A stretch of DNA of 64,000 bases, taken from assembly GCA_037447605.1 (NCBI GenBank), contig CM074812.1:2666001-2730000 (forward strand). The letters are read 5' to 3'. Positions 7,931 to 25,831 of the stretch are shown here, piece by piece (the stretch's first letter is position 1; every line of letters starts with the position of its first letter). The position numbers were made by a program, and so were the translations under genes. The notes under the pieces were generated by a model that ran no database searches, was not told the DNA's origin, and was given only the letters and a program-made list of their open reading frames with translations. This stretch comes from Zygnema circumcarinatum SAG 698-1b (Eukaryota; Plantae; Zygnematophyceae).

Positions 7931-9726
7931 GGGTAACTCTACTGCACCCCCGCGTTTTGTCTTTCGCACCCCCCCGTTTGAAAATTTTACCTGCCCGTTT
8001 TGGTTACCCCTCCAGTTTTGTATATTTCGGGATTTTTTTTTTTTCCCGCCCCTCCCGTCCCCTCCGACCCCCCTCCCTGCCCTCTCCTCCCTCCCCTCCC
8101 CTCCCCTCCTCCCCTCCCCCTCCGTTCCCCTTCCTCCCCTCCGTCTCTCACCTGCCCTCCTCCTCCCTCCCTCCCCTTCCTCCCCTCCCCTTCCCCCTCT
8201 CCCTCCCCTCCTCTCTCCGCTCCCTTCCCCTCCCCGCTCCTTCCCTCCGTTTCTTCCCTGGGCCCTTCTCCTCCCCTTCCTTCCCCCTTCCCTTCCTTCC
8301 CCCTTCCCCTCCCCTTCCCTCCCTCCCTCCCCTCCGCTCCCTTCCCCTCCGCTCCTCTTCCCCTCCGCTCTCTCCCTCCCCTGTCTGTCCTTCTTGCCTT
8401 CTTTCCTGCCTGTCCTCCCTCCCTCCTTCCTCTCTTCCCTTCCTTCCTCCCTTCCTCCCTCCTCCTCCCCTCCCCTCCCCTCCCTCCCCTCCCCTCCCCT
8501 CCCTCCCTCCCCCTCCCCTCCCCTCCCCTTCCTCCCTCCCTCCCCTCCCCTCCTCCCCCTCCGCTTCCTTCCCCTCCTCTGCTCCCTTCCTCTTCTTGTC
8601 CCCTCCCCTGCCCTCTCCCTCCCTCTCCCCTCCCCTTCCTCCCCTCCCCTCCCCTTCCCCTCCCTCCTCCCTCCCTCTCCGCTCCCTTCCCCTCCGTTTC
8701 CTTCTGTTCCCCTCCCTGCCCTGCTTCCTCGGCCCTCCCTTCCCGCCCGCTTCCTCCCCCTCCCCCTCCCCTCCCTCCCTCCCCTCCCCTTCCCCTTCCC
8801 CTCCCTTCCCCCTTCCCCCTCCCCTCCCTCTCCTCCCTTCCCCTCTGTCCTCCCTCTCACTCCCCCTCCCGGCCTTCCCTGCCCTCCCCTCGGCCCTCCC
8901 TTCCCGCCCGCTCCCTCCCTCCCTCCCCTCCCCTCCCTCCCCCTCCCTTCCCTTCCCCTCCGCCCTTCCTCCCTCCCTCCCTCCCCTTCCCCTCCGCTCC
9001 CTCACTCCCTCCCCTGCCCGTCCTCCTCGGCCCTCCCTTCCCGCCCGCTCCTCCCTCCCTTTTCCTTTTGCCCTTCCTTCTTTTTTCCCAACATTCCACC
9101 CCCTCGTTTTCCCTTCACTACCGACTTCCAACAATGTGCGATAAAGGAAAGGGGGTTTGCATTGGTCTCAATATTGTGAGGCCATCAAATAAACATGGAC
9201 AAAGTCAACATGGTGGAATCACAAGAAACTGGTCAGCTAACCAGCACAACAAAAAAACCACTGAAACTAAGCTTAAGCGCAAAAACGCAGCTTTAAACGC
9301 AGCTGCAAAAGTCACCAATATTGGGCAACTATTACTCTTTGTTTTTAGGTTAGGATCATAGACCCCCTAATTAAGGCAAGATCTTAAGTTGTGGCCTGTT
9401 TGCGTGCAATTGGAACATTTTTTCCCTTCAGCGTACTCGATATGGCTCTTGTCCCGGCTGATTGCCAAACTGCAAGGGGGGAGGGGAGGGGAGGGGAGCG
9501 GGCGGGAGGGGAGGGCCGGGGAGGACAGGGCAGGGGAGGGGAGCGGAGGGGAGGGGAGGGGAGGGAAGGAGAGGGCAGGGGAGGGAGTGAGCGGAGGGGA
9601 CGGGAGGGGCGGGAAAAGAATTTTTCCCGAAATATTCAAAACTGGAGGGGTAACCAAAACGGGCAGGCAAAATTTTCAAACGGGGGGGTGCGAAAGACAA
9701 AACGCGGGGGTGCAGTAGAGTTACTC
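7931..9726. mobile_element. Non-autonomous Mutator-like element (MULE) with 9-bp TSD and a residual transposase C-terminal zinc knuckle
   Basis: Direct repeat TTTTGTTAG at 7922-7930 and 9727-9735. TIRs of at least 135 bp (GGGTAACTCTACTGCACCCCCGCG.. / ..CGCGGGGGTGCAGTAGAGTTACTC). Minus strand 9367-9470 encodes SRDKSHIEYAEGKKCSNCTQTGHNLRSC (CX2CX3GHX4C). The rest is CT/GA low complexity. Confidence 0.85.
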
Positions 9727-9913
9727 TTTTGTTAGAGTCCGGCCTGCGGCCGTACTGATTCTCTCTGTAGGCGGATTATGTCCAAGCCATGACGAAGGTA
9801 GGCGCTCTCCTATTAAGCAGGCCCCTCCCCTCCCCTCCCCGCCCTCGCCCTCTCTCGCCCCTGGCCGGTTCCGCGTCCTCTCCCCTCCTGTCGCCAGCGG
9901 GCGCTTGGCCGCG

Positions 9914-12900
9914 ATGGCGCGCGCTCGGTCACTTACTCTCGCAGTGGCGGTCCTCCTCTTTGTCGCCGCCGCCGCCACCCCGCGCGAAGCCGCCGCTCAG
10001 GACATGGACCCGCGAAACAGTGAGCCGCCGCGGGAGGGAGGGAGGGAGGGAGGGAGGGAGGGAGAGAGGGAGGGAGGGGGGAAGAGAGGCTGGAAGAAAG
10101 ATGGGGGGCAGAGAAGGGTGCAAAAAGGGAATACGAGAAGGGGAAGAGGGGATCCCCTCTCACCCCCCTTCCCCTCCCGGGGGGGGAGAGAGGGGGGTGA
10201 GAGGTTGAGGAGAAACGGGGAGAGGGGAGGAGAGGGCTGGGGAGGGGGAAAGAGGGGGAAGAGAGCGGGGAAAGGAGGTTGGGGAGAGTGGGATTGAGGT
10301 GGGGGTGGTGAGAAGTAAGAGGAGGAGAGGGGGGGGGAGAGAGGGAGGAGAGAAGGGGGGAGAGAGGTTGTGAGAGAGGGGGGAAAATAGGAGGGGCGAG
10401 AGGGGGGGAGTTCGGGGGGAAGATTGGGGAAAGAGATGGGGNNNNNNNNNNAGGGAGGGAGGGAGGGAGGGAGGGCGGGCGGGCGGGCGGGCGGAGAACC
10501 AATAACCAAGAACTGTGATGATTCCTTCGCTTTCTTTCTTTCCCTTCCATTCCTGCTTTGATGAAGCTTCTAATCGATTTCGTTCTTTTCCTTCATGCAG
10601 CTGTTCAAATCTGCGATGAACTACTTAACGACTATGATCACTTTTCCTCTTTCGACTCCCCCTTCAATGACATTGGAAACTTCACAGTATCAACTATTGA
10701 TGAGTGTGCAGCTCTATGTAATGCCAACTGTTCCTGCATTGCATTTGTACCTTCAGTCCCTCTTCCCTCGTATTGCTGGATTAAGGACAAAATTTATCCT
10801 AAAAACAATTGGCGTTTAACCCCTTCTAGAGACATCTATATGAGGAAGCGGCGAAGCAGTAAGTGCTCAAAGATAGCTTCCTTTGCTACCATTTGAAGAG
10901 GAGGAAAGCTAGATGACCTAGTGTAGCTTTCCATATGAGGAAGGGAGAGAGGGAGGGAGGGAGGGAGTCGAGGGAGGGAGGAAGGGGAGGGAGGGGAGGG
11001 AAGGGAGGGAGGGGAGGGAAGGCAGGGAGGGAGGGGAGGGAGGAGAGGGGAGGGGAGGGGAGGGGAGGGAGGGGAGGATTTCTTTTTCTCCATCGAATGC
11101 ATCCTGATTACAAACTAAACCACAGACTATTACAGGCTATTGTTTAAGAGGCTATTTCTATACAGACTCTCATTCGCAATATCCTCCTCCTCCCCATCCC
11201 CATCCTCGGATTCGACCCGTAATGTTCAACACCAACTTCGTTACTCGTCAAGTTCTGTTTGTAGTCTACGTATTGATGCTTGGGGTGCAGTCGATCATGC
11301 TCAAAGGATGCTCCATACATTGAGGTTTATCAACCAGCCATTCTAATTCCTATGTATTGCGATCGGTTTTGTGACACCTACAGGTGGAAAAAATCTGGTT
11401 CCTATTGTTGTTCCAACAGCAATTGCTGTTGGCCTTATTTCCGTAGCAGCGCTCCTGGTTTTCATTTGGTGGTTGCGCCGAAACAAAAGAGCTTCAAGAG
11501 CTTCATATAAAGGTGCATAGAATGGCTCCTTGCTCTGATCCCTTGCTTCGTCCTCTCTCTGCCACATATGCACATCGCAACTATCTCCGGCTCAAGCTGT
11601 GCACTATCTTCAATTTCGTTCATCCTTATTCATCGACCGCCTCCTATAGTCCACTTTGCTTTCCCAACAAAAAGCGTACCTCTCCTAATAGATCCCTCCC
11701 GTGAAACAACGCATAGACGACGATAAAATGTTGACCATCTATTTTCCTTCATTCAAATACAACAAGCAATACATTACTCACATGACCTATACAGAGCATT
11801 TTGGGCATATTTTCGCTCTGCTCTCGTTCTGCTGCATATTTGAGTCCGACAAGACCAATTCCCCTGTTATATTGCGGCGTACAGGCATGCCAAGAGGCAC
11901 CCCCTCGCCTCGAGGAATGCTCTCACGGGCCGGCAAAGGTGTCATTCAGCTGCCCGGAGGACATCTCATTCAAGCTTTGACCTTTGAAGAAGTTGCAGCA
12001 GCAACTTCGAACTTCAGCGATGAGAACAAGCTTGGAAAAGGAGGATATGGAACAGTCTACAGAGGGACTGCTCCCGATGGCTCCGTTTGGGCGTTCAAGA
12101 GAGCGCAGCGAGTGAACGATGGAGAGGCCGACGCCGAGTTTGAAGACGAGGTGGGATGCAAAACTTCATGGCAGAGGGAGTTTACTCTTCAGGAGAGAGC
12201 AGCTTGTGGAATGCTGCTGCATTTGATTGACTCCTTATCTTCCTTTCATTATATATTCCAAAATTCTTACCTCCATTTGCTCCTGACAATCATATGCAAT
12301 GACTTGCACTTGCAGGAGAGGTGCTGATATTGGGAGGGGAGGTTAAGTGCAGGTCAAACTGACCGCACCCATGGCGCACCGTAACTTGGTCTCTTTGAAG
12401 GGATTCTGCGCGGAGAAGGGAGAGCAGATTCTCATATATGAGTTTGTGGCAAATGGAACCCTAAAGCAGCACCTCATGTTGGATCCAAGTGAGGCCCCAT
12501 TCTCGATCACGCGTTCTTGAGTGAAGGATTTCCTTCCATTGCCTGCATTCTAAAGCCTTGCAAAGCCCGACCAGTTCCTCTTTCTTAAGTTAACTCTTTC
12601 CATGTACATTTGATGGCATCATCGCCATCGTGAGATCAATGCCACATCCCCATTGCATGTCATGTACATGCCATATGATGGCATGTGCCGTTGCGCCCAA
12701 ATCCTCGTGATTCCCCATGATGCGGATGTTTTCCATGGACATGTGATGGCATCATCGCCATCGTGAGATCAATGCCACATCATTTCCACGAAGAAAGGAA
12801 AGCTTTAACCATACTTCTTGTTATTTTCTATTTTAAAGCTGAACGGATAAGAAAACGCCGAGAGTGATTGAAAAATAATATCGTGTTTATCTATTTACAA

Positions 12901-14164
12901 AGGGATTCGTGTGCCTAGCTAGCCTAGCTCTAAGCTCATTGAAATGTGCTAACTTGAGCTAATCCGTTTTTTTCTTTCTGTTTTCTCTGTACACAGAGCT
13001 CGGCGGAGTCCCTTTAAGTTTCTCGCAGCGTTTGGAGATTGCCGTCGGCTCCGCGCGAGGGCTGCAATACCTGCACAGCTTCGGGAACGAGCCGGTCATC
13101 CATCGAGACATCAAGTCGGAAAACATTCTCCTTGATGCGAACTTGCAGGTGAGAGCCCGGCATGCCTTATTCAAACACACATGAATATACTTTTCTTACT
13201 TTTTACTAGACTTTACCTCTCTACCTATCTCAAGTTCCCCATGTTTATTATGCTCTTTTCCTTTGTCCCCGGCTCTGCAGGCCAAAGTCGCAGACTTCGG
13301 TCTTTTGAAGCCCTTGAATGAAGAGGCAACGCACGTGTCGACTCGCGTTGCAGGAACCATTGGCTACATGGATCCGGAGTACCGCCATCTTCACCGAGTT
13401 TCAACAAAGAGTGATGTGTATAGGTAAACACCACGCGGAGGGCTAAAGAGGGAGGAGGGTGCAGAAGGGCAGCGGATGAGAGTTACAAAAAGTGTCTACG
13501 CTTCACTCGATTTAAAGCAATTCAACACGTATGTGACTTCTGTGCCTAATGGTGTGAACTTTGCATGCATGGCTGCAGCTTTGGAGTGGTGCTCTTGGAG
13601 CTAATCTCAGGGAAGAAGCCGGTCGTAATGGCTGACCGGCCTACAGAAATAGAGCAGACAGTAGAGCACATCACTCTGGTACAGTGGGTGAGTTCTGAAG
13701 CGCCTTCATTCATCTTTGTACTTTTCTTTCCCACCCTTTGTTCTTCTTGCTTCTTGTTTTGTCTGTAACAGCTTAGATGTAACTATTAGTTTTGAGCCTT
13801 TTACTTTAATCTTATGCTGCTCAACTTGTTTGCTCAGGTGAACCTGCAAGCTCAAGCTGGGAATTGGACAACCATAGTTGATCCTCTCCTTAAGGAAGAC
13901 TACCCCCTTGAAGGCGCCAAGAGGTTCATTCAGCTTGCAAGATTATGCACACAACTGGAGAGCCGAGTGAGGCCGAGCATGCAGGAGGTTACAAGAATCC
14001 TTGAAGAGATAATTTCTGGAGGGGCTGTGGACTGGGAGAAGGACATTGGAACAGTACCAAATCAAACGATCCCTTTCCCTTATCAACAGGGGAGTGGCTC
14101 CATAGCAACAACCTCAAGTGAAAGCTTCATTCCTCCACTTTCGCAACGTCCAGGGATCCGGTAA
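9914..14164 (+). CDS. Receptor-like kinase A: signal peptide + PAN/apple-like domain + TM + RD Ser/Thr kinase (RLK/Pelle family), about 541 aa
   Basis: Exons 9914-10019, 10601-10858, 11384-11512, 11885-12150, 12353-12488, 12997-13148, 13281-13423, 13579-13687, 13838-14164, all GT-AG and in phase. [26 protein letters not shown]-like [48 protein letters not shown] followed by LRRNK. Kinase motifs [75 protein letters not shown]. Confidence 0.9.
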
Positions 14165-14622
14165 ATTAGGTCTGCCACTGCAACATCAAAACTTGTATTG
14201 ATGATTATGTTTTCTAATTAGGTCTGCCTCTGCATCATCAAAACTTGTATTGATGATTATGTTTTCTAATTAGGTCTGCCTCTGCATCATCAAAACTTGT
14301 ATTGATGATTATGTTTTCTAATTAGGTCTGCCTCTGCATCATCAACATTTGTATTGATGATTATGTTTTCTAATTAGGTCTGCCACTGCAACATCAAAAC
14401 TTGTATTGATGATTATGTTTTCTAATTAGGTCTGCCTCTGCATCATCAAAACTTGTATTGATGATTATGTTTTCTAATTAGGTCTGCCTCTGCATCATCA
14501 AAACTTGTATTGATGATTATGTTTTCTAATTAGGTCTGCCTCTGCATCATCAAAATTTGTATGGATGATTATGTTTTCTAATTAGGTCTATCATCAAAAT
14601 TTGTGTTGATGATTATGTTTTC
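14163..14622 (+). repeat. 52-bp minisatellite, 9 copies, starting at the RLK-A stop codon
   Basis: Unit taattaggtctgcc(t/a)ctgca(t/a)catcaaaacttgtattgatgattatgttttc at 14163, 14215, 14267, 14319, 14371, 14423, 14475, 14527 and 14579 (last copy has an internal deletion). The paralogue has one copy at about 17885-17940. Confidence 0.95.
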
Positions 14623-15199
14623 TAAGTTAAATAGATGGTTCACGGAAGCAAAGCTGAGTGCGAGGTCAATCAATTTATTGGTTACTTAATCAAAGAGCAG
14701 TTTGGTGAGGAAGTTTTCTGCAATATCAGTGACCAGACAGGAGCCAGTTCGTCCTTGTTGAAGGGACGGTTCCATTTTCTGGAAGGCTAACCAAATTCAG
14801 TGCAGAGAGAGAAAACAATCGAGCAGGATAGATAGCTTTGCCTTTCAATACAAAAGATGCAAGAAAACAAGTAAAACATACGACTTCAGTGCTTCTGGCA
14901 ATAAAGTTATTTTTTTAGGCTTTAGAATAATATAAGAAAAAGTTCAATAGTTCAATTTTTTTGCTGTGGATTTCAACTTTTGCCACGACTCAAGATTCAA
15001 GCAGTCCAAGGGATTTCCTGAGGAGAATGGTACACCGTCCCCCCTTCTTGGATATCCCATCCCCCTTTCGAGACATTTCGCACTTCCAGTTTGTCTATAC
15101 ACTCCCCCTATTTGGGATTTTATTTTTTATATATTTTTTACAAGTAGTGTTTGCAAACGATTATTCAGCGGCGTTGATCATTGCGTCCCCGGTAGATGA

Positions 15200-15385
15200 A
15201 CTTTTAGCTGCTGAACCACTGCAGTTGAAAAACCCCCACCAAATTACGACGAAACAAGGTCGATCTACTGCGCGCGTAATTTGGCGAGCAACCGGGACAA
15301 GAGCCATTTTGAGTATGTTGAGGGTAACAAATGTTCCGATTGCAAGCAACCAGGCCACAATTTATGAACTTGCGCTAATTAAAAC
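15200..15385 (+). pseudogene. Decayed MULE transposase C-terminal fragment
   Basis: Encodes LASNRDKSHFEYVEGNKCSDCKQPGHNL*TC, homologous to the fragment at 9367-9470, with an in-frame TGA. A GGAGAATG-family terminus remnant lies at 15022-15065. Confidence 0.65.
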
Positions 15386-16367
15386 AAAAACAATGCTTTT
15401 CCCTAGACATAGATTGTTGTATGGCTTGACATCAAGTCCAAAGGATGGGCTGCCGGATTCAAAGTGATTTGGGCAATTTCTCCTATATTCAAAATATGCG
15501 CTCTCTTGCGAACTTCACCCTCGTCCCTCCCTCCCTCCCTCTCTCCCTCTCTCCCTCCTCTCCCCTCCCTCCCTCCTCTCCCCTCCCCTCTCCCCCCTCC
15601 GCCCTCCTTTTGAGGAATGTTTTGGCAGGCTGGCTCCAGCGTTGTAGTTCTGTACACTGTACTGTAGGCTCCAAATGCGCAAACGCTTAGTCGAGTTTTT
15701 CTTTATTTAGGACCTTTTTATTCTTTGTTTACCCTTTGTTTCCATTGAAATGCATTATGTTCGATTGTGGATGTGAAGCTCTATGATGATGTAATGGTTG
15801 GCTTGCTTTGCGTTGCTTCTATCTCTCTCTCTCTCTCTCTCCCCAAAAAGTTGGCTGACCGGACGAAAAGTTCAGACCGGCTAGAAAACTAGCCAACATT
15901 GAAATGGGAATCTTTTCTCCACTAAAAGGATGCAAAGCAAAAACCTTCTCCCGTAATAAATGATGATAGCGTGGATCTTGCGAAGGAACAAATAAAAGCT
16001 ACATCGGCAAAAATAGTTTCTGGGCGACTAGTAGCTACCTCAATGAAACTGTTCTTTTCCGCTAGAAAATATTTTAGATAAAAAATTTCTTGTGCTTGCG
16101 TTCGATAAACTACTTCAATATCGGAAATGACAGTTTCTGATAGATATAGGATCTCAAGTTATCAAAAGAAGACCGCGAGAAACTAAACCATCCTGATAAA
16201 GTTGGCAGAAAGCTTGTAATGGGCAATTGCAGCTTCTAAAGTAAAAGTAGATTTTTCTACCACTAAAGAAAGAGCCAAAAAAATTCATTGCTTGATAAAA
16301 GTGGTAGTGCTAAACTAAACTAAAGTGCTGAGTTGAGAGTATTTAATGAGTCAATACCCAATACTCT

Positions 16368-17610
16368 CTTTTACCTGAAGCTGACTTTTGTAAAAAGCCT
16401 TGTAAGCTTTCTTGGTGGCCGGCGCGAGCTAAACTTTCTATTTTGCTTTGCGTAGAAAAATACCATTCAGCAATTCAGAAAACTGTGTGTCCTTGTTGCC
16501 TTCACAAACGGGCTCAAATATCTTGTGTAAAAAATAAATATCTAAATACAACAAGGTTAAAAAAATCGTTAATCGTTAATAAAACAGCGTTTCAAGCATG
16601 TCCTAAGAGTAAAGCTCCGGTAATATTTGCTGGCGGAAATAAAAAATAGTTCGGTCAGTTGGCTGGCTGGGAATTTGCTTCTCAGTTTCTTGACTAGTTT
16701 TTTGCACTAGTTGGAAAGAATAGTTTTTATCTTTCATAAAAAAAGTTGATGAACGGAATTCTCTCTCTTAAAAAGAACAGCTTCTTTGACGAGAAAAAAA
16801 GTCAAGATGCTTATTTATTTTTACAAATATGAGACCTTTTTCCTTGACTTACTATTCTTTTGACTACTTCTCTCAGACTTTTGATTGCCTCTTTGTTGTT
16901 TCTATTGTCTGACTAAGGCCATTTTTATTAGGCGATATTATCAGTATCAAAAAGAGATTGCCAATTGCTTCTTCCCCGCTCCAGTAAACTAATTATTTTT
17001 TTTTATTTAAAAGAGTTTGCTTTTTGAAAAATATCAATTTTTGAAAAATGGCCTTAGTCAGACAATAAGAACAACAAAGAGGCAATCAAAAGTCTGAGAG
17101 AAGTAGTCAAAAGAATAGTTAGTCAAGGAAAACGATCTCATATCTGTAAAAATAAATAAGCATCTTGACTTTTTTTTCTCGTCAAAGAAGATTTTTCTTT
17201 TCAAGAGAGAAAATTCTGTTCATCAACTTTTTCTTTTTTTATTTTAGATAAAAACTATTCTTTCCAACTAGTGGAGAAAACTAGTCAAGAAACTAAGAAG
17301 CAGATTTCCAGCCAGCCAACAGGCCGAACTATTTTTTATTGCCGCCACCAAATATTACCGGAGCTTTACTCTTAGGACATGCCTGAAAGCCAGATTTTAC
17401 TTACGATTTACAATTTTTTTGATCTTGTTGATTTTAGATATTTATTAGTTTACAAGATTTTTGAGCCCGTTTCTGAAGGCAACAAGGACACACAGTTTTC
17501 TAAATTGCTGAATGGTATTTTTCTACGCAAAGCAAAATAGAAAGTTTAGCTCGCGCCGGCCACCAAGAAAGCTTACAAGGCTTTTTACAAAAGTCAGCTT
17601 CAGCTAAAAG
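16368..17610. repeat. Long imperfect inverted repeat (about 560-bp arms, about 117-bp loop), AT-rich
   Basis: 16368-16925 (cttttacctgaagctgacttttgtaaaaagcc...gactaaggccattttt) versus 17044-17610 (aaaaatggccttagtc...ggctttttacaaaagtcagcttcagctaaaag). Many substitutions and small indels; no TSD seen. Confidence 0.9.
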
Positions 17611-17937
17611 TGACATTTACTTATTTTCTTTCATCTTTTTAAGAAAAGGCAAAGCTATCTATCCTGCACGATTGCTCTCCTCTCTCTCTCTCTCTCTCTC
17701 TGCACTGAATTTGGTTAGCCTTCAAGAAAATGGAACCGTCCCTTTAAAAAGGACGAACTGGCTCCTTTCTGGTCACTAACAGTGCAGAAAACTTCCTCAC
17801 CAAACTTCTCTCTGATTAAGCTAAGTAGCCAATAAATTGATTGAACTCGCACTCAGCTTTGTTTCCGCTAACCATCTTGTTAACTTAGGAAACATAATCA
17901 TCAATACAAGTTTTGATGTTGAAGAGGCAGACCTAAT

Positions 17938-20900
17938 TTACCGGATCCCTGGACGTTGCGAAAGTGGAGGAATGAAGCTTTCACTTGAGGTTGTTGCTAT
18001 GGAGCCACTCCCCTGTTGATAAGGGAAAGGGATCCTTTGATTCGGTATTGTTCCAATGTCCTTCTCCCAGTCCACAGCCCCTCCAGAAATTATCTCTTCA
18101 AGGATTCTTGTAACCTCCTGCATGCTCGGCCTCACTCGGCTCTCCAGTTGTGTGCATAATCTTGCAAGCTGAATGAACCTCTTGGCGCCTTCAAGGGGGT
18201 AGTCTTCCTTAAGGAGAGGATCAACTATGGCTGTCCAATTCCCAGCTTGAGCTTGCAGGTTCACCTGAGCAAACAAGTTGAGCAACATAAGAAGAAAGTA
18301 ACAGAGTCAAAACTAATAATTACATCTAAGCTGTTGCAGACAAAACAATCAAGCTGAACAAAGGGTGGGAAAGAAAAGTAAAAAAATGAATGAAGATCCG
18401 AAGTTTTGATATAGGGCGCTTCAGAACTCACCCACTGTACCAGAGTGATGTGCTCTACTGTCTGCTCTATTTCTGTAGGCCGGTCAGCCATTACGACCGG
18501 CTTCTTCCCTGTGATTAGCTCCAAGAGCACCACTCCAAAGCTGCAGCATGCATGCAAAGATCACACCATTAGGCACAGAAGGCACATACGTGCTGAATTG
18601 CTTTATATCGACTGAAGCGGAGACACTTTTTGTAACTCTCATCCGCTGCCCTTCCGCACCCTCCTCCCTCTTTAGCCTCTGCGTGGCGTTTACCTATACA
18701 CATCACTCTTTGTTGAAACTCGGTGAAGATGGCGGTACTCCGGATCCATGTAGCCGATGGTTCCTGCAACGCGAGTGGACACGTGCGTCGCCTCTTCATT
18801 CAAGGGCTTCAAAAGACCGAAGTCTGCGACTTTGGCCTGCAGAGCGGGGTACAAAGAAAAAGAGCACAATAAACATGTTGATCTTGAGATAGGCAGAGAG
18901 GTAAAGTCTGGTATTTTTAAAAGGTATATTCAAGTGTTTGAATAAGAAGGCATGCGCGGCTCTCACCTGCAAGTTCGCATCAAGGAGAATGTTTTCCGAC
19001 TTGATGTCGCGGTGGATGACCGGCTCCTTCGCGAAGCTGTGCAGGTATTGCAGCCCTCGCGCGGAGCCGACGGCAATCTCCAAACGCTGCGAGAAACTTA
19101 AAGGGACTCCGCCGAGGTCTGTGTACAGAGCAAACAGAAAGAAAAAAACGGGCTAGCTCAAGTTAGCACATTTCAATGAGCTTAGAGCTAGGCTAGCTAG
19201 GCACAGGAATCCCTTTGAAAGTAGATAAACATGATATTGTGTTTCAGTCACTCTCGACGTTTTCTTATTCGTTCAGCTGTAAAATAGAATAGTAACAAAA
19301 GTCTGGTTAAAGTTTCCTTTTCTTCGGGGAAATGAGGTGGCATTGATCTCACGATGGCGATGAGGCAATCAAATGTATATGGAAAGAATTAACTTAAGGA
19401 ACCACGAGAAACTGGTCGAGCTTTTCAAGGTTTTAGAATGCAAGCAATGGAAGAACAAAAAAAAAAAAAAGGAGAAAAAAAAAAATCCTTCACTCAAGAA
19501 CGCGTGATTGAGAAAGGGGCCTCACTTGGATCGAGCATGAGGTGCTGCTTCAGGGTTCCATTTGCAACAAACTCATATATGAGAATCTGCTCTCCCTTCT
19601 GCGCGCAGAATCCCTTCAAAGAGACCAAGTTGCGGTGCGCCATGGGTGCGATCAGGTTGACCTGCACTTCCTCCCCTCAAAATATCAGCAGCCTCTCCTC
19701 CAAGTGCAAGTCATTGCATATGATTGTCAGCAGCAAATGGGAGGTAAGAATTTTGGAAGAGATAATGAAAGGAAGATAAGGAGTCAACCAAATGCAGCAG
19801 CATTCCACAAGCTGCTCTCTCCTGAAGAGTAAACTCCCTCTGCCATGCAGTTCTGCATCCCACCTCGTCTTCAAACTCTGCGTCGGCCGCTCCATCGTTC
19901 ACTCGCAGCGCTCTCTTGACCGCCCAAACGGAGCCATCGGGAGCAGTCCCTCTGTAGACTGTTCCATAACCTCCTTTTCCAAGCTTGTTCTCGTTGCTGA
20001 AGTTCGAAGTTGCTGCTGCAACTTCTTCAAGGGTCAAAGCTTGAATGAGATGTCCTCCCGGCAGCTGAATTATGCCTTTGCCTGCACCCCTTGCGAGCCT
20101 CCCTCGAGGAGAGGGGGTGTCTCCTTGCATGCCTGTACGCCGCAATATAACAGGGGAATTGGTTTTGTCAGACTCAAATATGAAGCAGAACGAGAGTAGA
20201 GCGAAAATACGCCCGAAATGCTGTGTACAGTGTCATGTGAGTAATGTATTGCTTGTTGTGTTTTAATCAAGGAAAATAGTTGGTCGACAGTTTATCTTTG
20301 TCTATGCGTTGTTTCACGGGAGGGATCTATTAGGAGAGGCACCTAAAAACCGTAAAAACCCTAAAAACTTTTTGTTGGGAAAGCAAAGTGAACTATAAAA
20401 GGCGGTCGATGAATAAGGATGAACGAAATTGAAGATAGTGCACAGCTTGAGCCGGAGATAGTTGCGATGTTTCTGCGTGGCAGAGAGAGGACGAAGCAAG
20501 GGATCAGAGCAAGGAGCCATTCTATGCACCTTTATATGAATCTCTTGAAGCTCTTTTTTTTCGGCGCAACCACCAAATGAAAACCAGGAGCGCTGCTACG
20601 GAAATAAGGCCAACAGCAATTGCTGCTGGAACAACAATAGGAACCAGATTTTGACTCGATTTTTTTCCACCTGCAGCTGTCACAAAACCGAGAGCAATAC
20701 ATCGGAATTAGAATGGCTGACCGATAAACCTCAATGTATGGAGCATCCTTTGAGCATGATCGACTGCACCCCAAGCATCAAAACGTAGACTAAAAACAGG
20801 ACTAGAAGAGTAACGAAGGTGGTGTTGAATATTACGGGACGAATCCGAGGATGGGGATGGGGAGGGTACTGCTGCTGGAAGAGGGGAGGATATTGCGAAT

Positions 20901-23900
20901 GAGAAAACTCAAGAATTCAATGAGACTATCGAAAGCTTGAATAAGTGCCAGATTTCATTATCCACAACTACAAGCTGCAAGTACTCTGTAAGTGACCTTC
21001 CACACTCTCAATAAAGAGAAGGTTAAAAGTATGAAGATGTAGATCGGGTGCAGAAGTACCGATTTCGTTGGACGAAGGTGGTGGTGGTGGTAATGATTCC
21101 GGAGGAGGTACTGCAATTGAGAACACTCAAGAATTCAATAAGTCTATATAGAAATAGCCTCTATCACAATAGCCTGTAAGAAGTCTGTGGTTTAGTTTGT
21201 AATCAGGATACATTCGATGGAGATGAAGATGATGGACTGCAGGAGAGAGGATACTGGCATTGAGAAAACACAAGGATTCTAAGAAAGTATCGGGACACTT
21301 GAAGAGTATCAATGTGGGGAACAACGGGGACGATACTGCAATTGAGAAAACTCAAGAACTCAATGGGACTATTAAAAGCTTGAATAAGTGTCAGATTTCA
21401 TTGTCCACAACTACAAGCTGCAAGCTAAAAGGCGATACTCTGTAAGTGATCTTCCACACTCTCAATTAAGAAAAGGTAAAAAGTATGAAGCTGAAGGTTG
21501 GGTTCAGAAGTACCGATTTTGTTGAGGGAAGGTGGTGGTGGGGGTACTGATTCCGGAGGAGCAGCTACTGTAATTCAGAAATCACAATAATTCAATGAGT
21601 CTGAATAGAAACAGCCTCTATCACAATTGCCTGTAAATAGTCTGTAGTTTAGTTTGTAGTCAAGATTCATTCAAAGGAGTGAAAAAGCATCAATGTGGGG
21701 AAAAACTCTTGTTTTCAGGATTACCAGTTGTCTTAAGGGGAGGTGGCGGTGAGGGTGATGGTGGTGGAGGAGGGGGTACTGCAACTGCAAAAATAATGGT
21801 TTTCGTCAAAGATAGTACTTTGTTGACGATGTCTAATCTTTGTACAACAATAAAAAAAAGATAGAGATTAAATGTCCAGTGTATGCACGTGAACAGTGAT
21901 GCTTCATTTTGGTTTTTTATTCCAAACTGAGAGCAAAGGTTTAGCGGTGAGATTAGTAGTCAAGCTGGAGATAAAACTGATTGAACTTAGAAGAATTGAT
22001 AACTTACTGTCGCGCACATACAGCTTAACAGATTCTGCGCTCTTTGTGTTGGTAACATTAGTTTTCAGGTAACATTCGAGCCTGTCTTCTACCAGACGTG
22101 TAGCAAATCCGAGGCACGAGCAGTCGCTTGCACAGAGCGGTATGCAATCTTCATCAGTTACCACAGTCACATTTGTGTAGTCGTTCCCATTAGAATTAGT
22201 ATTATTGGACAATGTGAACGTATCAGCTAGGCCCGCACATTCTCCTGCACAGTCGAACATAAAAAATGAAGCAAATGATGAATAATATCAATGATAATAT
22301 TATCATCATCAGCCGTATAATTCGCGTATCGGTATATCGCATCGTCAGTATCTATGGCTATACCACTAGATCTTTTTAAATTCATGGAAGCGATGGAGAC
22401 GCACAGGGGAGGAATGCAGCAAGACTGTATAAGCAGACGAGCCAGATATTAAAAAAACTCACAATTGACCAGACTGACTACGCATTCAGGACTGATTCAA
22501 AACGAAAGAGTGAGCTCCCTACGAAAGTAGACCGAATCTAACAGTGCCCTTCTAATCTCTAGGGATGTGACGGTGAGAGAATAAAAAAGGCGATTTCGAA
22601 AATTACCGCCAGAAGATGGTGTGGGTACTCGTGTATACAACTTAACAGCCGAGGTAGAGCTCTGTTGGTTGGAAACATCAGTTTTCAGGGAACATACGAG
22701 ACGCGAGACGTTTTCTTGAGTAGAAAAATACATAGAAAATCCGAGGCAGAAGCAATCGCTATTGCACAGCGAAAGGCACTGGACATTGTCTGCCACGTAA
22801 TATGCTCCATAGTCGCTCCCCGGAGAATCACTATAATTGAAATAGCTGAAGGCATTCGTTAGGCCTGCACATCCTCCTGCACAACCAAACATAAAACTGA
22901 AGCAAATGATGAATAATGTCGATGATGACAGTATCATCATTAGCCGTATAATTCACCTATCGATCTATCACATCGTAACATGTACTGCCACCTATGGAAC
23001 CGTATGGTGCCCTGGATCGCGTAAGTCACGAACTCACTGGCCAGCGATTGGCTAATGGGGGAGTTGGCAACGCACCCGTCCAGCTGCTCTCAAAGCTCCA
23101 CGACAAAATCTGATGAATATCATAACATAGTCCCGTTGCAGCTGTGAATCCAACGTAGGCCGCCGTTACATTGGCGCAGGCCGTACACCCGAGAGGCCGA
23201 AGGATGCTGCAAAGGGACTCGGTGTAGGTGACAACGGGGTTATGAGGGGGGCTATCGACATCGCTCAAGTATATGGACCACTTGCTGGTATCGCCGAAGT
23301 AGTGTACCCATGCATACTTCGTCGAGTTTTCCCACAAGTGGTCAAGGGCGGACGTACTTTGTTGTGTAACAACCGAGGGGCTCCACTTTTCAAGTATTGC
23401 AACATGTCTTCCATCAGGTTCGTTGTACTCAGGATTGGGGTACGTGTCGAATGCAACGGCTATGGAACCAACATTGGCCGATGGAACGGTAGTATCTCCG
23501 TACGTGTACCCGAGGCTCCCGCCCTTGACTAAAGAAATGTTGCTCAAGTCCGCATTGGAAGCAACAAAAGTGAAAGTAAGGCCATCTCCGTCACACCCAT
23601 TGTTGGTGTTGAAAATGAGGAACGAGAAACTAGCCGTAAAAGAAGCTGCTTGGCAATCTCCAGTTGTACTTTTCCGGAGCAAGGTCACCGGAGCCGGATG
23701 GAATGCATTACCAACAACGTATTGGTTCATGTCTGTAAGCTGCAGACTGCTGCCAACGATTGCTGTGCTGCCTTGCATGATGGGAGGTAGGCTTGCGTTG
23801 AAACCCTCATAGTTGAAGGCCGTCGGGGGAGTAAGAACTGCATCACCAAAAAGACGAAGATCGGAAATAAGTAGAAGAGCAATGCATCTGTCGCGTAGCT

Positions 23901-25387
23901 GGTAGAAAGGAGAGTACTTAATGGAACTAACTTGGGAAGAGCTCTCTGTGAAAAAATCCAACTTGGAATCATTCCCAAATTTCGAATGAAGATTGGTGAA
24001 GCACCGGAAAGGAAACGATCGAGGAGAAAAAAACAGCACAGCAGTGTTGTTTTAGAAGCTCTGTTCTGTAGAGCAGTCAGATGGAGAAAACACTCTCCCC
24101 ACCTCTTCCCCCCCTCTGTCTCCCTCTCTCCCCCACTCTCCCCCCCTTTTTCCCCAACCTCTCTGCCTCCTCTCAGTCCCCCTCTGAAAACAATTTTTTG
24201 ATCGTCCGGAGACAAATGCTCGAAAGAATCGTGCGAAGGATTCATTCCATGCATGCATCATGCTATCAAACTTCAACGGTCCGAGTAACATGCATGCTGT
24301 CGATTTGAATTACAGATATTCATCCTGCAAACGTTACGATGAGAAGTCCCTTCTGTCCTTTCATCATGAAAGGACTGTTCTACGCTCAATTCTTGGTCAT
24401 GGTTAACCAGAGGCGTCACTTTACAAAACCTGAGATGACCACGCCATTAAACAAAGTACCCAAAACACAAAAGGACCTAAATCCAGAACTCACCCCTCCA
24501 ATGGAAGTGGTTGGGAAACAGCTTACCACATATTCCGTACTCTTTCTGACATCCGACACCACAGTAGTCCGCCGTTTTGCCGCACTTGTTGACATTGGAG
24601 CAGCACGCAGTGTCGTTACATTGCAGATTTACAAAGGGCCCACAAGTGCCTGAAAGAAACGGAGCAGCAACAAGCAAGTACGACACGCAAACAACAACAA
24701 AAAAACAAAAAAAGTGAAATGCGTATTAAGAAAACAAAACAGAAAGATAAGAAAACAAGATGCAAATACATAGAGACAAGTGGTTCACAGAGGCATTGAC
24801 TGATGAAATGCATGTGCAAGCAAAAGTTCCACGAACAATTCCATTTTAACGCCGTTCAGGGCAGACGCTGACCGTCAGTAGATGTCGGAAGTAGACTCCG
24901 GCGAGTTGTTCTTGTCGGACCCAGTTCAAGAGTTCTCCCCTCTTCTGTTCAGAGTCAATTTTGAAAAGTGGGATGTAAGAAGCAGAGAAGGGAAGGAAAA
25001 AGAGTGAAGACGAAAGACATACGAGACACGAGGAAAATATCATACATACAAGACCACTCCATCCCTCCCTCCCTCCCTCCTTCCTGAGCTGCACGCGGGG
25101 AGCAATGCAGCACGTTAACACATGAAGACAGCAGAAAAGCCAGCTCTTAAAAAATCTCAAAACTGACAAGGACTGAATGGGGTTTCTCCTTTCCAGATCC
25201 CTCTCTCCCTCCCTCCCTCCCTCCCTCCNNNNNNNNNNCCTCCCTCCCTCCCTCCCTCCCTCCCTCCCTCCCTCGGCGGCTCACTGTTTCGCGGGTGCAT
25301 GTCCTGATTGGCGGCTTCGCGCGCGGCGGCGGCTGCGGCAATGAGGAGGATCGCCGCCGCGAGAGAGAGAGACCGCGCGCGCGCCAT
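17938..25387 (-). CDS. Receptor-like kinase B: signal peptide + hevein/CBM18 + legume (L-type) lectin + 2x PAN/apple-like + Pro-rich stalk + TM + RD kinase, about 989 aa
   Basis: Exons 25387-25285 (SP), 24649-24527 (hevein), 23837-23076 (L-lectin), 22876-22607 and 22244-22008 (PAN), 21778-21725, 21567-21514, 21110-21060, 20874-20836 (Pro-rich), 20670-20530 (TM), 20132-19864, 19661-19526, 19118-18967, 18836-18694, 18540-18432, 18264-17938 (kinase). All GT-AG with an open frame throughout. Kinase exons are nearly identical to RLK-A. Use of each stalk micro-exon is predicted, not proven. Confidence 0.85.
22008..22876 (-). CDS. Two tandem PAN/apple-like domain exons of RLK-B
   Basis: [21 protein letters not shown] and [21 protein letters not shown]. 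The intron sequence upstream of each is also duplicated (about 22920-22975 versus 22290-22345); both exons phase 1-1. Confidence 0.8.
23076..23837 (-). CDS. Legume (L-type) lectin domain exon of RLK-B
   Basis: [74 protein letters not shown] matches the lectin_legB motif order; 762 nt, phase 1-1. Confidence 0.9.
24527..24649 (-). CDS. Hevein-like chitin-binding domain (CBM18) exon of RLK-B
   Basis: [40 protein letters not shown]: 8 Cys in hevein spacing (CG..C..CCS..CG..YC..GCQ..YG.C); 123 nt, phase 1-1. Confidence 0.85.
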
Positions 25388-25831
25388 CGCGGCCAAGCGC
25401 CCGCCCGAGACAGGAGGGGACAGGACGCGGGCGCGGCCAGAGGCGAGGAGAAGGCGGGGAGAGGGAGGGGGGGGGAGGGGCCTGCTTAGTAGTTGGGCGC
25501 CGTCCCCCGCCATGGCCGGTGACAGGGACGTTGGAGCGTTCTCGGCGCGTTGACTTGGGACGTTGGCGCGTTGACTTGGGACGGGTGGGATGTGACCGTC
25601 ATTCCTGGAAGGAATGGTTTATCGAATTTAGGATTCGCCAGGATTTAGGCCAATCACCATCTGCCACGTGTTATTTTGTATGACGTGGCTGCAGACTTTG
25701 TAAGAAACGACAGAATACATCATTTTAAATGTACGGAGAGTTCAGAAGTCAATTTCCTTATGAGGAAAACATTAGGGGTTGTCAGACTTAAAAATCATCC
25801 GTATGTCCGTTCGTACGTTTTTCACGAAATA

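Follow-up and report, generated by a model that had tools for sequence, protein, structure and literature searches.

The class 1-1 type of exon shuffling has been treated as restricted to the Metazoa (Patthy; PMC8001218). The same layout is found in a streptophyte alga, Zygnema circumcarinatum SAG 698-1b, in a window of 64,000 nucleotides (nt) taken from GenBank assembly GCA_037447605.1 (contig CM074812.1, positions 2,666,001 to 2,730,000, forward strand), where two convergent receptor-like kinase (RLK) genes of the RLK/Pelle type, RLK-A on the + strand and RLK-B on the - strand, lie in a palindrome. As in the metazoan proteins, each disulphide-rich, mostly beta domain is encoded by an exon of its own, with phase-1 introns on both sides from the signal peptide (SP) boundary onward, the modules have undergone tandem duplication, and they are mounted on a membrane-receptor chassis with an intracellular catalytic part of mixed intron phases. 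Here, however, the host is a streptophyte alga, a plant RLK/Pelle kinase forms the chassis, the modules are of the hevein, legume lectin, PAN and extensin-like proline types, and the evidence documents a single locus rather than a genome-wide excess. An excess of phase-1 introns is also known at signal-peptide cleavage sites (PMC1626468).

Receptor genes with symmetric module exons have also been described outside the animals. In the brown algae, for example, LRR exon shuffling is reported for the ROCO and NB-TPR candidate immune receptors (PMC11378527; Zambounis 2012, as cited there). These receptors resemble the Zygnema genes in the allocation of one binding module to each symmetric exon, in tandem exon duplication, and in having fast-evolving modules, but their exons are of 72 bp and phase 2, contain a single repeat type, belong to cytoplasmic proteins, and give rise to many alternative isoforms. 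The Zygnema locus, by contrast, combines different domain families, on phase-1 exons, with a transmembrane kinase, and the RNA contigs (Logan) analysed revealed no alternative isoforms. The LRR-RLK genes of rice encode one LRR per short phase-2 exon (PMC3050792). In this case too, the ectodomain of a plant RLK is composed of symmetric exons and has been expanded by exon duplication, but the rice exons are of phase 2 and multiply one repeat type within one domain, whereas those of Zygnema are of phase 1 and encode different families.

The L-type and G-type lectin receptor kinases of the land plants share with the present pair the RLK/Pelle kinase, the single helix, and either a legume lectin (as in RLK-B) or a membrane-near PAN (as in both genes). 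The G-type receptor kinases combine B-lectin, S-locus and PAN domains, whereas the Zygnema genes have neither B-lectin nor S-locus; the L-type lectin RLK genes of land plants are mostly intron-poor, whereas here the domains are found on separate exons. Hevein-plus-kinase architectures have been mentioned for ferns, chlorophytes and Marchantia (PMC6362431), and no description of a hevein, a legume lectin, two PANs and a proline stalk in combination was found in the literature searched. In the streptophyte algae Closterium and Nitella, cDNAs indicated RLK duplications and “gene shufflings” (Sasaki et al. 2007, Gene 401:135, cited in PMC10868138). In those algae, as in Zygnema, related kinases are joined to different ectodomains, but the work dealt with cDNAs only. 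In Zygnema, the genomic basis can be seen as well: modules on phase-1 exons, breakpoints within introns, and a palindromic pair of recent origin. No report of phase-1 module exons or exon shuffling in streptophyte RLKs was found in the literature searched, the coverage of which was incomplete.

Both gene models were rebuilt from the sequence, and every junction is of the GT-AG type. RLK-A (9914-14164, + strand) is a sequence model that draws on its GT-AG junctions, its open frame, its PAN_2 and Pkinase matches, and its kinase motifs, and comprises nine exons and 541 amino acids (aa). These are an SP exon (9914-10019, 106 nt), one PAN exon (10601-10858, 258 nt), a transmembrane (TM) exon (11384-11512, 129 nt), and six kinase exons (11885-12150, 12353-12488, 12997-13148, 13281-13423, 13579-13687 and 13838-14164). 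RLK-B (17938-25387, - strand), which is based on RNA contig joints, the assembled frame, and matches to Pfam and to PDB sequences, would encode 989 aa with the exons of an earlier, sequence-only reading of this DNA; the RNA-supported model has 16 exons, with an open frame of 1004 aa. Its SP exon (25387-25285) is followed by an added exon of 72 nt (24944-24873, phase 1-1), found in the RNA, and then by the hevein exon (24649-24527, 123 nt), the legume lectin exon (23837-23076, 762 nt), the PAN1 exon (22876-22607, 270 nt) and the PAN2 exon (22244-22008, 237 nt). The stalk is encoded by micro-exons 1, 2 and 3 (21784-21725, 60 nt; 21567-21514, 54 nt; 21110-21060, 51 nt), and is followed by the TM exon (20676-20530, 147 nt) and six kinase exons (20132-19864, or K1; 19661-19526, or K2; 19118-18967; 18836-18694; 18540-18432; and 18264-17938).

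In both models, all the exons between the SP exon and the first kinase exon are multiples of three, with phase-1 introns on both sides. The SP exon itself ends in phase 1, and the hevein, the lectin, the PANs, the stalk pieces and the membrane helix each occupy a single exon. The introns within the kinase half of the same genes are in phases 0, 1, 0, 2 and 0, which provides an internal control for the pattern. Phase-1 introns generally make up a share near 0.28, at which the chance that about six evolutionarily independent introns (of the nine, allowing for duplicated units) would all be of phase 1 is about 5e-4. The ectodomain is a chain of class 1-1 modules, with one domain per exon, and in RLK-B this arrangement is verified by RNA.

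The RNA contigs were matched to positions 19500-25450 at a likeness of at least 95%, and the RLK-B stretch is represented in four runs from the same organism. The contigs of runs X2, X3 and X5 are identical to RLK-B, with depths of ~90-290, and the predicted introns are spliced out. Nine consecutive introns, from the 72-nt exon through K1, are confirmed in this way, all of them in phase 1, and the exons between them are multiples of three. The joints seen are those of the 72-nt exon to the hevein, hevein to lectin, lectin to PAN1, PAN1 to PAN2, PAN2 to micro-exon 1, micro-exons 1 to 2 and 2 to 3, micro-exon 3 to TM, and TM to K1, together with K1 to K2 within the kinase. The 72-nt exon, in addition to being joined to the hevein exon, has a read depth in its bin that fits 72 nt exactly.

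The exon sizes given by the sequence-only reading were reproduced exactly from the sequence, and the RNA then changed those of micro-exon 1, the TM exon and micro-exon 4, in addition to supplying the 72-nt exon. Tandem acceptors lie 6 nt apart on the - strand at 21778-21784 (TTGCAG TTGCAG) and 20670-20676 (GACAG CTGCAG), and the upstream acceptor is picked in both pairs, giving a micro-exon 1 of 60 nt, not 54, and a TM exon of 147 nt, not 141. In the TM exon of RLK-A, the upstream AG of the tandem acceptor has been lost. Four micro-exons had been proposed for RLK-B, of which three are spliced into the RNA; the fourth (20874-20836, - strand, 39 nt) is decayed and is skipped in all the spliced contigs, the joint from 21060 to 20676 bypassing it at a depth of 119-255. 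The splice sites were shifted at two exons, and the phase-1 pattern remained intact at nine junctions. A stronger GTGAGT donor located 30 nt past the lectin exon, which would be in phase 0, was considered and rejected, given that the RNA uses the GTGCGT directly after 23076.

Diversification through combinatorial splicing, as envisaged in the sequence-only reading, is not borne out. A single path is found at each junction in the three RNA runs, with no module-skipping isoforms, although Logan contigs drop rare variants and minor isoforms could escape, and the only skipped exon is decayed and always skipped.

Other contigs reach beyond the two genes. Some that are neither RLK-A nor RLK-B cover K1 and K2 at 95% or more (within 19526-19968), which shows that at least one further close kinase paralogue is expressed; no further RLK copy was found within the 64-kb window by tblastn with both proteins. 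A contig of run X1 (19942-20030) was examined as possible proof of RLK-A expression and was discarded, given that the neighbouring contig is neither A nor B, and a third paralogue may explain it. In another contig, which is very abundant in X1 (23064-23124, depth ~470), the end of the lectin exon agrees with RLK-B in 38 of 39 letters and is spliced at the 23076 boundary to a proline-rich exon from outside the window. A further contig (23809-24087) contains the first 29 nt of the RLK-B lectin exon and 250 nt of the upstream intron, with a 97.8% match, and leaves the RLK-B sequence at 24087, next to an intronic G-rich array. These contigs fit shared modules in other gene contexts.

The identity of the modules was established by a Pfam scan of all the large ectodomain exons, using the cut-offs of Pfam itself. 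Matches above the cut-off were obtained for Chitin_bind_1 (30.6 bits), Lectin_legB (123.5 bits) and PAN_2 (22.7 bits in RLK-A and 25.0 bits in PAN2 of RLK-B), and the scan of these exons recovered no B-lectin (GNA) or S-locus glycoprotein domains. The PAN1 exon of RLK-B has no Pfam match alone, and is 43-45% identical to PAN2. The lectin exon, which spans the whole legume-lectin domain, is found only in RLK-B, with none in RLK-A. In the hevein module (24527-24649, - strand), all eight cysteines, the serine and the tyrosine are kept, and Val and Lys appear to have taken the place of the two tryptophans that belong to the classical site of chitin binding. Between the SP and the hevein, the 72-nt exon supplies a basic linker rich in Thr and Arg, which has no domain match and whose RR pair might serve for processing. 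The sequence shows a hydrophobic N-terminus and a helix (VPIVVP...FIWWLRR), and both genes present the layout of an RLK, with an SP, an ectodomain, one helix and a C-terminal kinase.

Both Pkinase and PK_Tyr_Ser-Thr match the kinase exon K3. The glycine loop (GKGGYGTV), the lysine, the HRD, the DFG and the activation-loop GYMDPEY are kept in both kinases, so that both predicted proteins retain the motifs of an active RD kinase. When exon-sized pieces were searched, the best solved relatives (PDB) of the last kinase exon were CERK1, LYK3 and BAK1. The similarity of the full models to the matches of a protein library was that of RLKs in general (33-44% identity, local BLAST), and the search of the library with the last kinase exon recovered only kinases of 33-45% identity, neither paralogues nor the gene itself. 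A search for homologous proteins with the PAN exon of RLK-A produced no match, while that with the lectin exon of RLK-B retrieved three proteins, all distant, of which two match PEP-CTERM (PF07589). For the open reading frame of the last RLK-A exon, a search for encoding contigs found no record. RLK-A and RLK-B probably act as cell-surface sensors with different ligands, and the modules of RLK-B suggest a glycan or wall ligand.

Modules have also been duplicated within RLK-B, and the duplicated units carry intron sequence along with them. The PAN1 and PAN2 exons are an old tandem exon duplication (22008-22990, - strand, including ~110 nt of conserved upstream intron), with a synonymous divergence (Ks) of 0.68 and a nonsynonymous divergence (Ka) of 0.47. 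The introns that precede PAN1 (22877-22990) and PAN2 (22245-22360), also on the - strand, are 79-88% identical over their last ~110 nt, which are better conserved than the synonymous sites. Two exact blocks of 20-23 nt in these stretches have no other copy in the window. Either a constrained element in the intron or local conversion is suggested by this conservation. The second case is the tandem duplication of a stalk unit of ~445 bp (20883-21683, - strand; 83.6% identity over 359 nt, at an offset of 443). Each of these units has one used and one decayed proline-rich micro-exon, and the skipped micro-exon 4 is the counterpart of the decayed micro-exon copy near 21340 in the adjoining repeat unit.

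The two genes lie in a near-complete palindrome, which covers positions 9810-25492 of the window, with arms that are 8-9% diverged and, by self-comparison, a centre at ~16985 and a spacer of ~117 nt (16927-17043, with no strand). Both reading frames are intact. The stretches 11189-14875 and 16368-16926 of the RLK-A arm match 20865-17616 and 17610-17044 of the RLK-B arm, in inverted orientation, at ~91-92% identity, and an outer block (9810-10064 versus 25492-25240) matches at 87%. The shared 3' arm, of ~5.7 kb, is collinear through all the introns and the whole 3' flank up to the centre of the palindrome. The self-comparison bears out, through these blocks, the claim that the genes are convergent inverted copies with similar SP, TM and kinase exons, introns and 3' flank. 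A spacer as short as this, together with two gaps of 10 N at matching places in the two genes, just past the donor of intron 1, might be taken to indicate an artefact of assembly, whether through an erroneous fold-back join or through the head-to-head placement of two haplotypes. This is highly improbable, however, given the distance between the arms, which differ by many indels as well as by a 1.5-kb insertion and an expanded repeat, the absence of any gap from 10452 to 25228, a stretch that spans both kinases and the centre, and the fact that the vegetative cells of this algal group are haploid. No reading frame crosses the N gaps, and the (GGGA)n arrays that contain them seem to stop sequencing or assembly. 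The locus is a real convergent gene pair of receptor-like kinases in a zygnematophyte.

The arms differ in two further respects. The 1.5-kb insertion (14876-16367) is present only in the arm of RLK-A. A C-rich array occupies positions 15513-15612 within it, and its stretch 15280-15381 shows 82% complementarity to 9368-9469, which lies upstream of RLK-A. A unit of 52 nt, which begins at the stop codon of RLK-A, is found in nine tandem copies (14164-14625, 94% matches), with a single copy in RLK-B (17938-17881), and this ninefold repeat is a young expansion in the 3' untranslated region (UTR) of RLK-A.

Both of the breakpoints at which the homology between RLK-A and RLK-B ends are found inside introns, one in intron 1 and the other in the intron that precedes the TM exon, in line with the earlier suggestion that modules were exchanged by recombination in introns. 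On the left, the breakpoint falls within the G-rich arrays that intron 1 contains in both genes. In RLK-A, (GGGA)n arrays (10029-10483, + strand) fill most of this intron and hold both an N gap (10442-10451) and the breakpoint, while in RLK-B a (GGGA)n array (25196-25277, - strand) follows the intron-1 donor and holds the other gap (25229-25238). On the right, a G-rich array of 148 nt (10933-11080, + strand) follows the PAN exon of RLK-A, and the RLK-B-like intron resumes at its 3' end, which marks the breakpoint. G-rich arrays follow the donors in four introns of these genes. Homologous recombination from array to array was considered for both breakpoints, but is plausible only on the left, as RLK-B has no array on the right.

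A relic of the proline stalk (11082-11218, + strand) is preserved in RLK-A, and consists of a copy of the intron repeat (11087-11168) and, after it, a remnant of micro-exon 4 (11188-11218). The repeat is 91.6% identical to positions 21223-21141 of RLK-B, before micro-exon 3, and 83.5% identical to 21687-21597, before micro-exon 2. As the repeat of RLK-A is 91.6% identical to its own unit in RLK-B, compared with a divergence of 16% between the RLK-B units, the stalk units predate the split between the genes. The remnant of micro-exon 4 lost its acceptor through a 17-nt deletion, and the only other AG would yield a frame-breaking exon of 53 nt, so no equivalent of this micro-exon is recognised in RLK-A. 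The retention of these RLK-B-type stalk relics identifies RLK-A as a derived, reduced copy.

In the TM and kinase exons, 393 of the 418 aa are identical between the two proteins, with a Ks of 0.070 and a Ka/Ks of 0.38, and the Kimura two-parameter distance (K2P) of the introns and flank is 0.05-0.20. The PANs present a different picture from this Ks of 0.07. The PAN of RLK-A differs from PAN1 and PAN2 of RLK-B at a proportion of synonymous sites (pS) of 0.88 and 0.83, respectively, which is saturation, with all six cysteines kept, and for this reason it is not a diverged leftover of the RLK-B PANs. The PANs of the two genes are unrelated in sequence and have the same phase boundaries. The proposal of a near-identical chassis with unrelated sensor modules is upheld by these values, except that RLK-A is a reduced copy and not an equal alternative build.

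The reduction of RLK-A raises the question of whether it is merely a decaying, unexpressed deletion derivative of RLK-B, to which the phase-1 pattern would be irrelevant. It is without the hevein, the lectin and the stalk, has a broken micro-exon relic and the ninefold 52-nt repeat after its stop codon, and no unambiguous RLK-A transcript was seen among the contigs, which were matched to RLK-B at 95%. This filter would hide most of the RLK-A-type contigs, however, and their absence is therefore uninformative. A PAN exon with saturated synonymous sites, moreover, cannot be derived from the RLK-B PANs by deletion, and RLK-A retains an open frame of 541 codons, all 16 splice sites, the six PAN cysteines and the kinase motifs. 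The shared exons have two indels (of 12 and 3 nt) in 1262 nt, compared with 14 in 1519 nt of intron, where 11 are not multiples of three. This contrast, of in-frame exon indels with frequent frame-breaking lengths in the introns, indicates that selection kept the frame in both copies, and the Ka/Ks value counts in the same direction. Given this, RLK-A is not a simple dead deletion copy, and its interpretation as such is improbable.

The history towards which the evidence leans is an inverted duplication of an RLK-B-like gene, followed by the replacement of the sensor half of RLK-A through intronic recombination. An ancestor that already had the duplicated stalk units would have given rise to an inverted copy, forming a fold-back palindrome, at a time corresponding to ~0.07-0.09 substitutions per site. 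In RLK-A, ~4 kb, from the G-rich array of intron 1 to the intron before micro-exon 3, would then have been replaced, with the loss of the 72-nt exon, the hevein, the lectin, PAN1, PAN2 and two micro-exons. The incoming sequence may have been a cassette of ~1 kb, with one unrelated PAN exon bounded by G-rich arrays, and micro-exon 3 would have been lost through a further deletion of ~275 nt. As all the boundaries are of phase 1, the product would have stayed in frame, as SP, PAN, TM and kinase.

Several observations weigh against this history, or against parts of the structure on which it is built. The right breakpoint abuts a G-rich array that is found only in RLK-A, and both the donor of the PAN cassette and the direction of the exchange are inferred. 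In the RNA, neither the PAN exon of RLK-A nor its junctions were recovered among the contigs, which were matched to RLK-B only, and the joint between the SP exon and the 72-nt exon of RLK-B does not occur among the contigs listed; this link is inferred from phase, orientation, coverage and the homology with RLK-A. The shared 5' block, finally, has a K2P of 0.15-0.16, compared with ~0.08 in the 3' block, and two gene conversions at different times would account for this unequal divergence no less well than one duplication.

The unequal blocks are what would be expected under concerted evolution, in which the genes would be old neighbouring paralogues whose ectodomains have always been different, and gene conversion from arm to arm would have homogenised two tracts of different age, one comprising the TM exon, the kinase and the 3' flank, and the other, separately, the 5' UTR and the SP exon, with the ectodomains outside both. 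The abrupt end of the homology within introns is compatible with such tracts, and inverted repeats with a short spacer, as in palindromic gene pairs, are classic substrates of gene conversion. This scenario must nevertheless account for an arm that is collinear over ~5.7 kb, through the introns, the 3' flank and the centre, and that includes non-functional RLK-B stalk relics in RLK-A, with neither a gradient of divergence nor a mosaic of tracts along its length, and it still requires the same later deletions in RLK-A. It is the main rival, considered rather unlikely, if far from negligible, and duplication followed by replacement is preferred. Under either history, the chimeric receptors arose by exchange at intronic breakpoints. 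The architecture permits the gain, loss and duplication of modules, and one such event has been caught at this locus.

A wider regime can be proposed only tentatively, and is doubtful on present evidence. Recombination within introns rich in same-sense G-rich arrays may have led to the exchange of phase-1 modules of the lectin, PAN, hevein and proline-rod types between RLKs and wall proteins, a process that would have yielded much of the diversity of RLK ectodomains that the land plants later inherited as intron-poor genes.

For the locus itself, the exon-shuffling reading is supported. An animal-like gene layout, verified by RNA, is present in an alga near the root of the land plants, together with the tandem duplication of modules and a recently formed pair of genes, one of which has probably exchanged its sensor half on an almost unchanged kinase. 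The origin of the ectodomains of plant RLKs has been known only as “domain shuffling”, from comparisons of proteins, and the locus makes the mechanism testable, and RLK-A and RLK-B form a natural pair in which the binding partners of the sensor modules can be compared.

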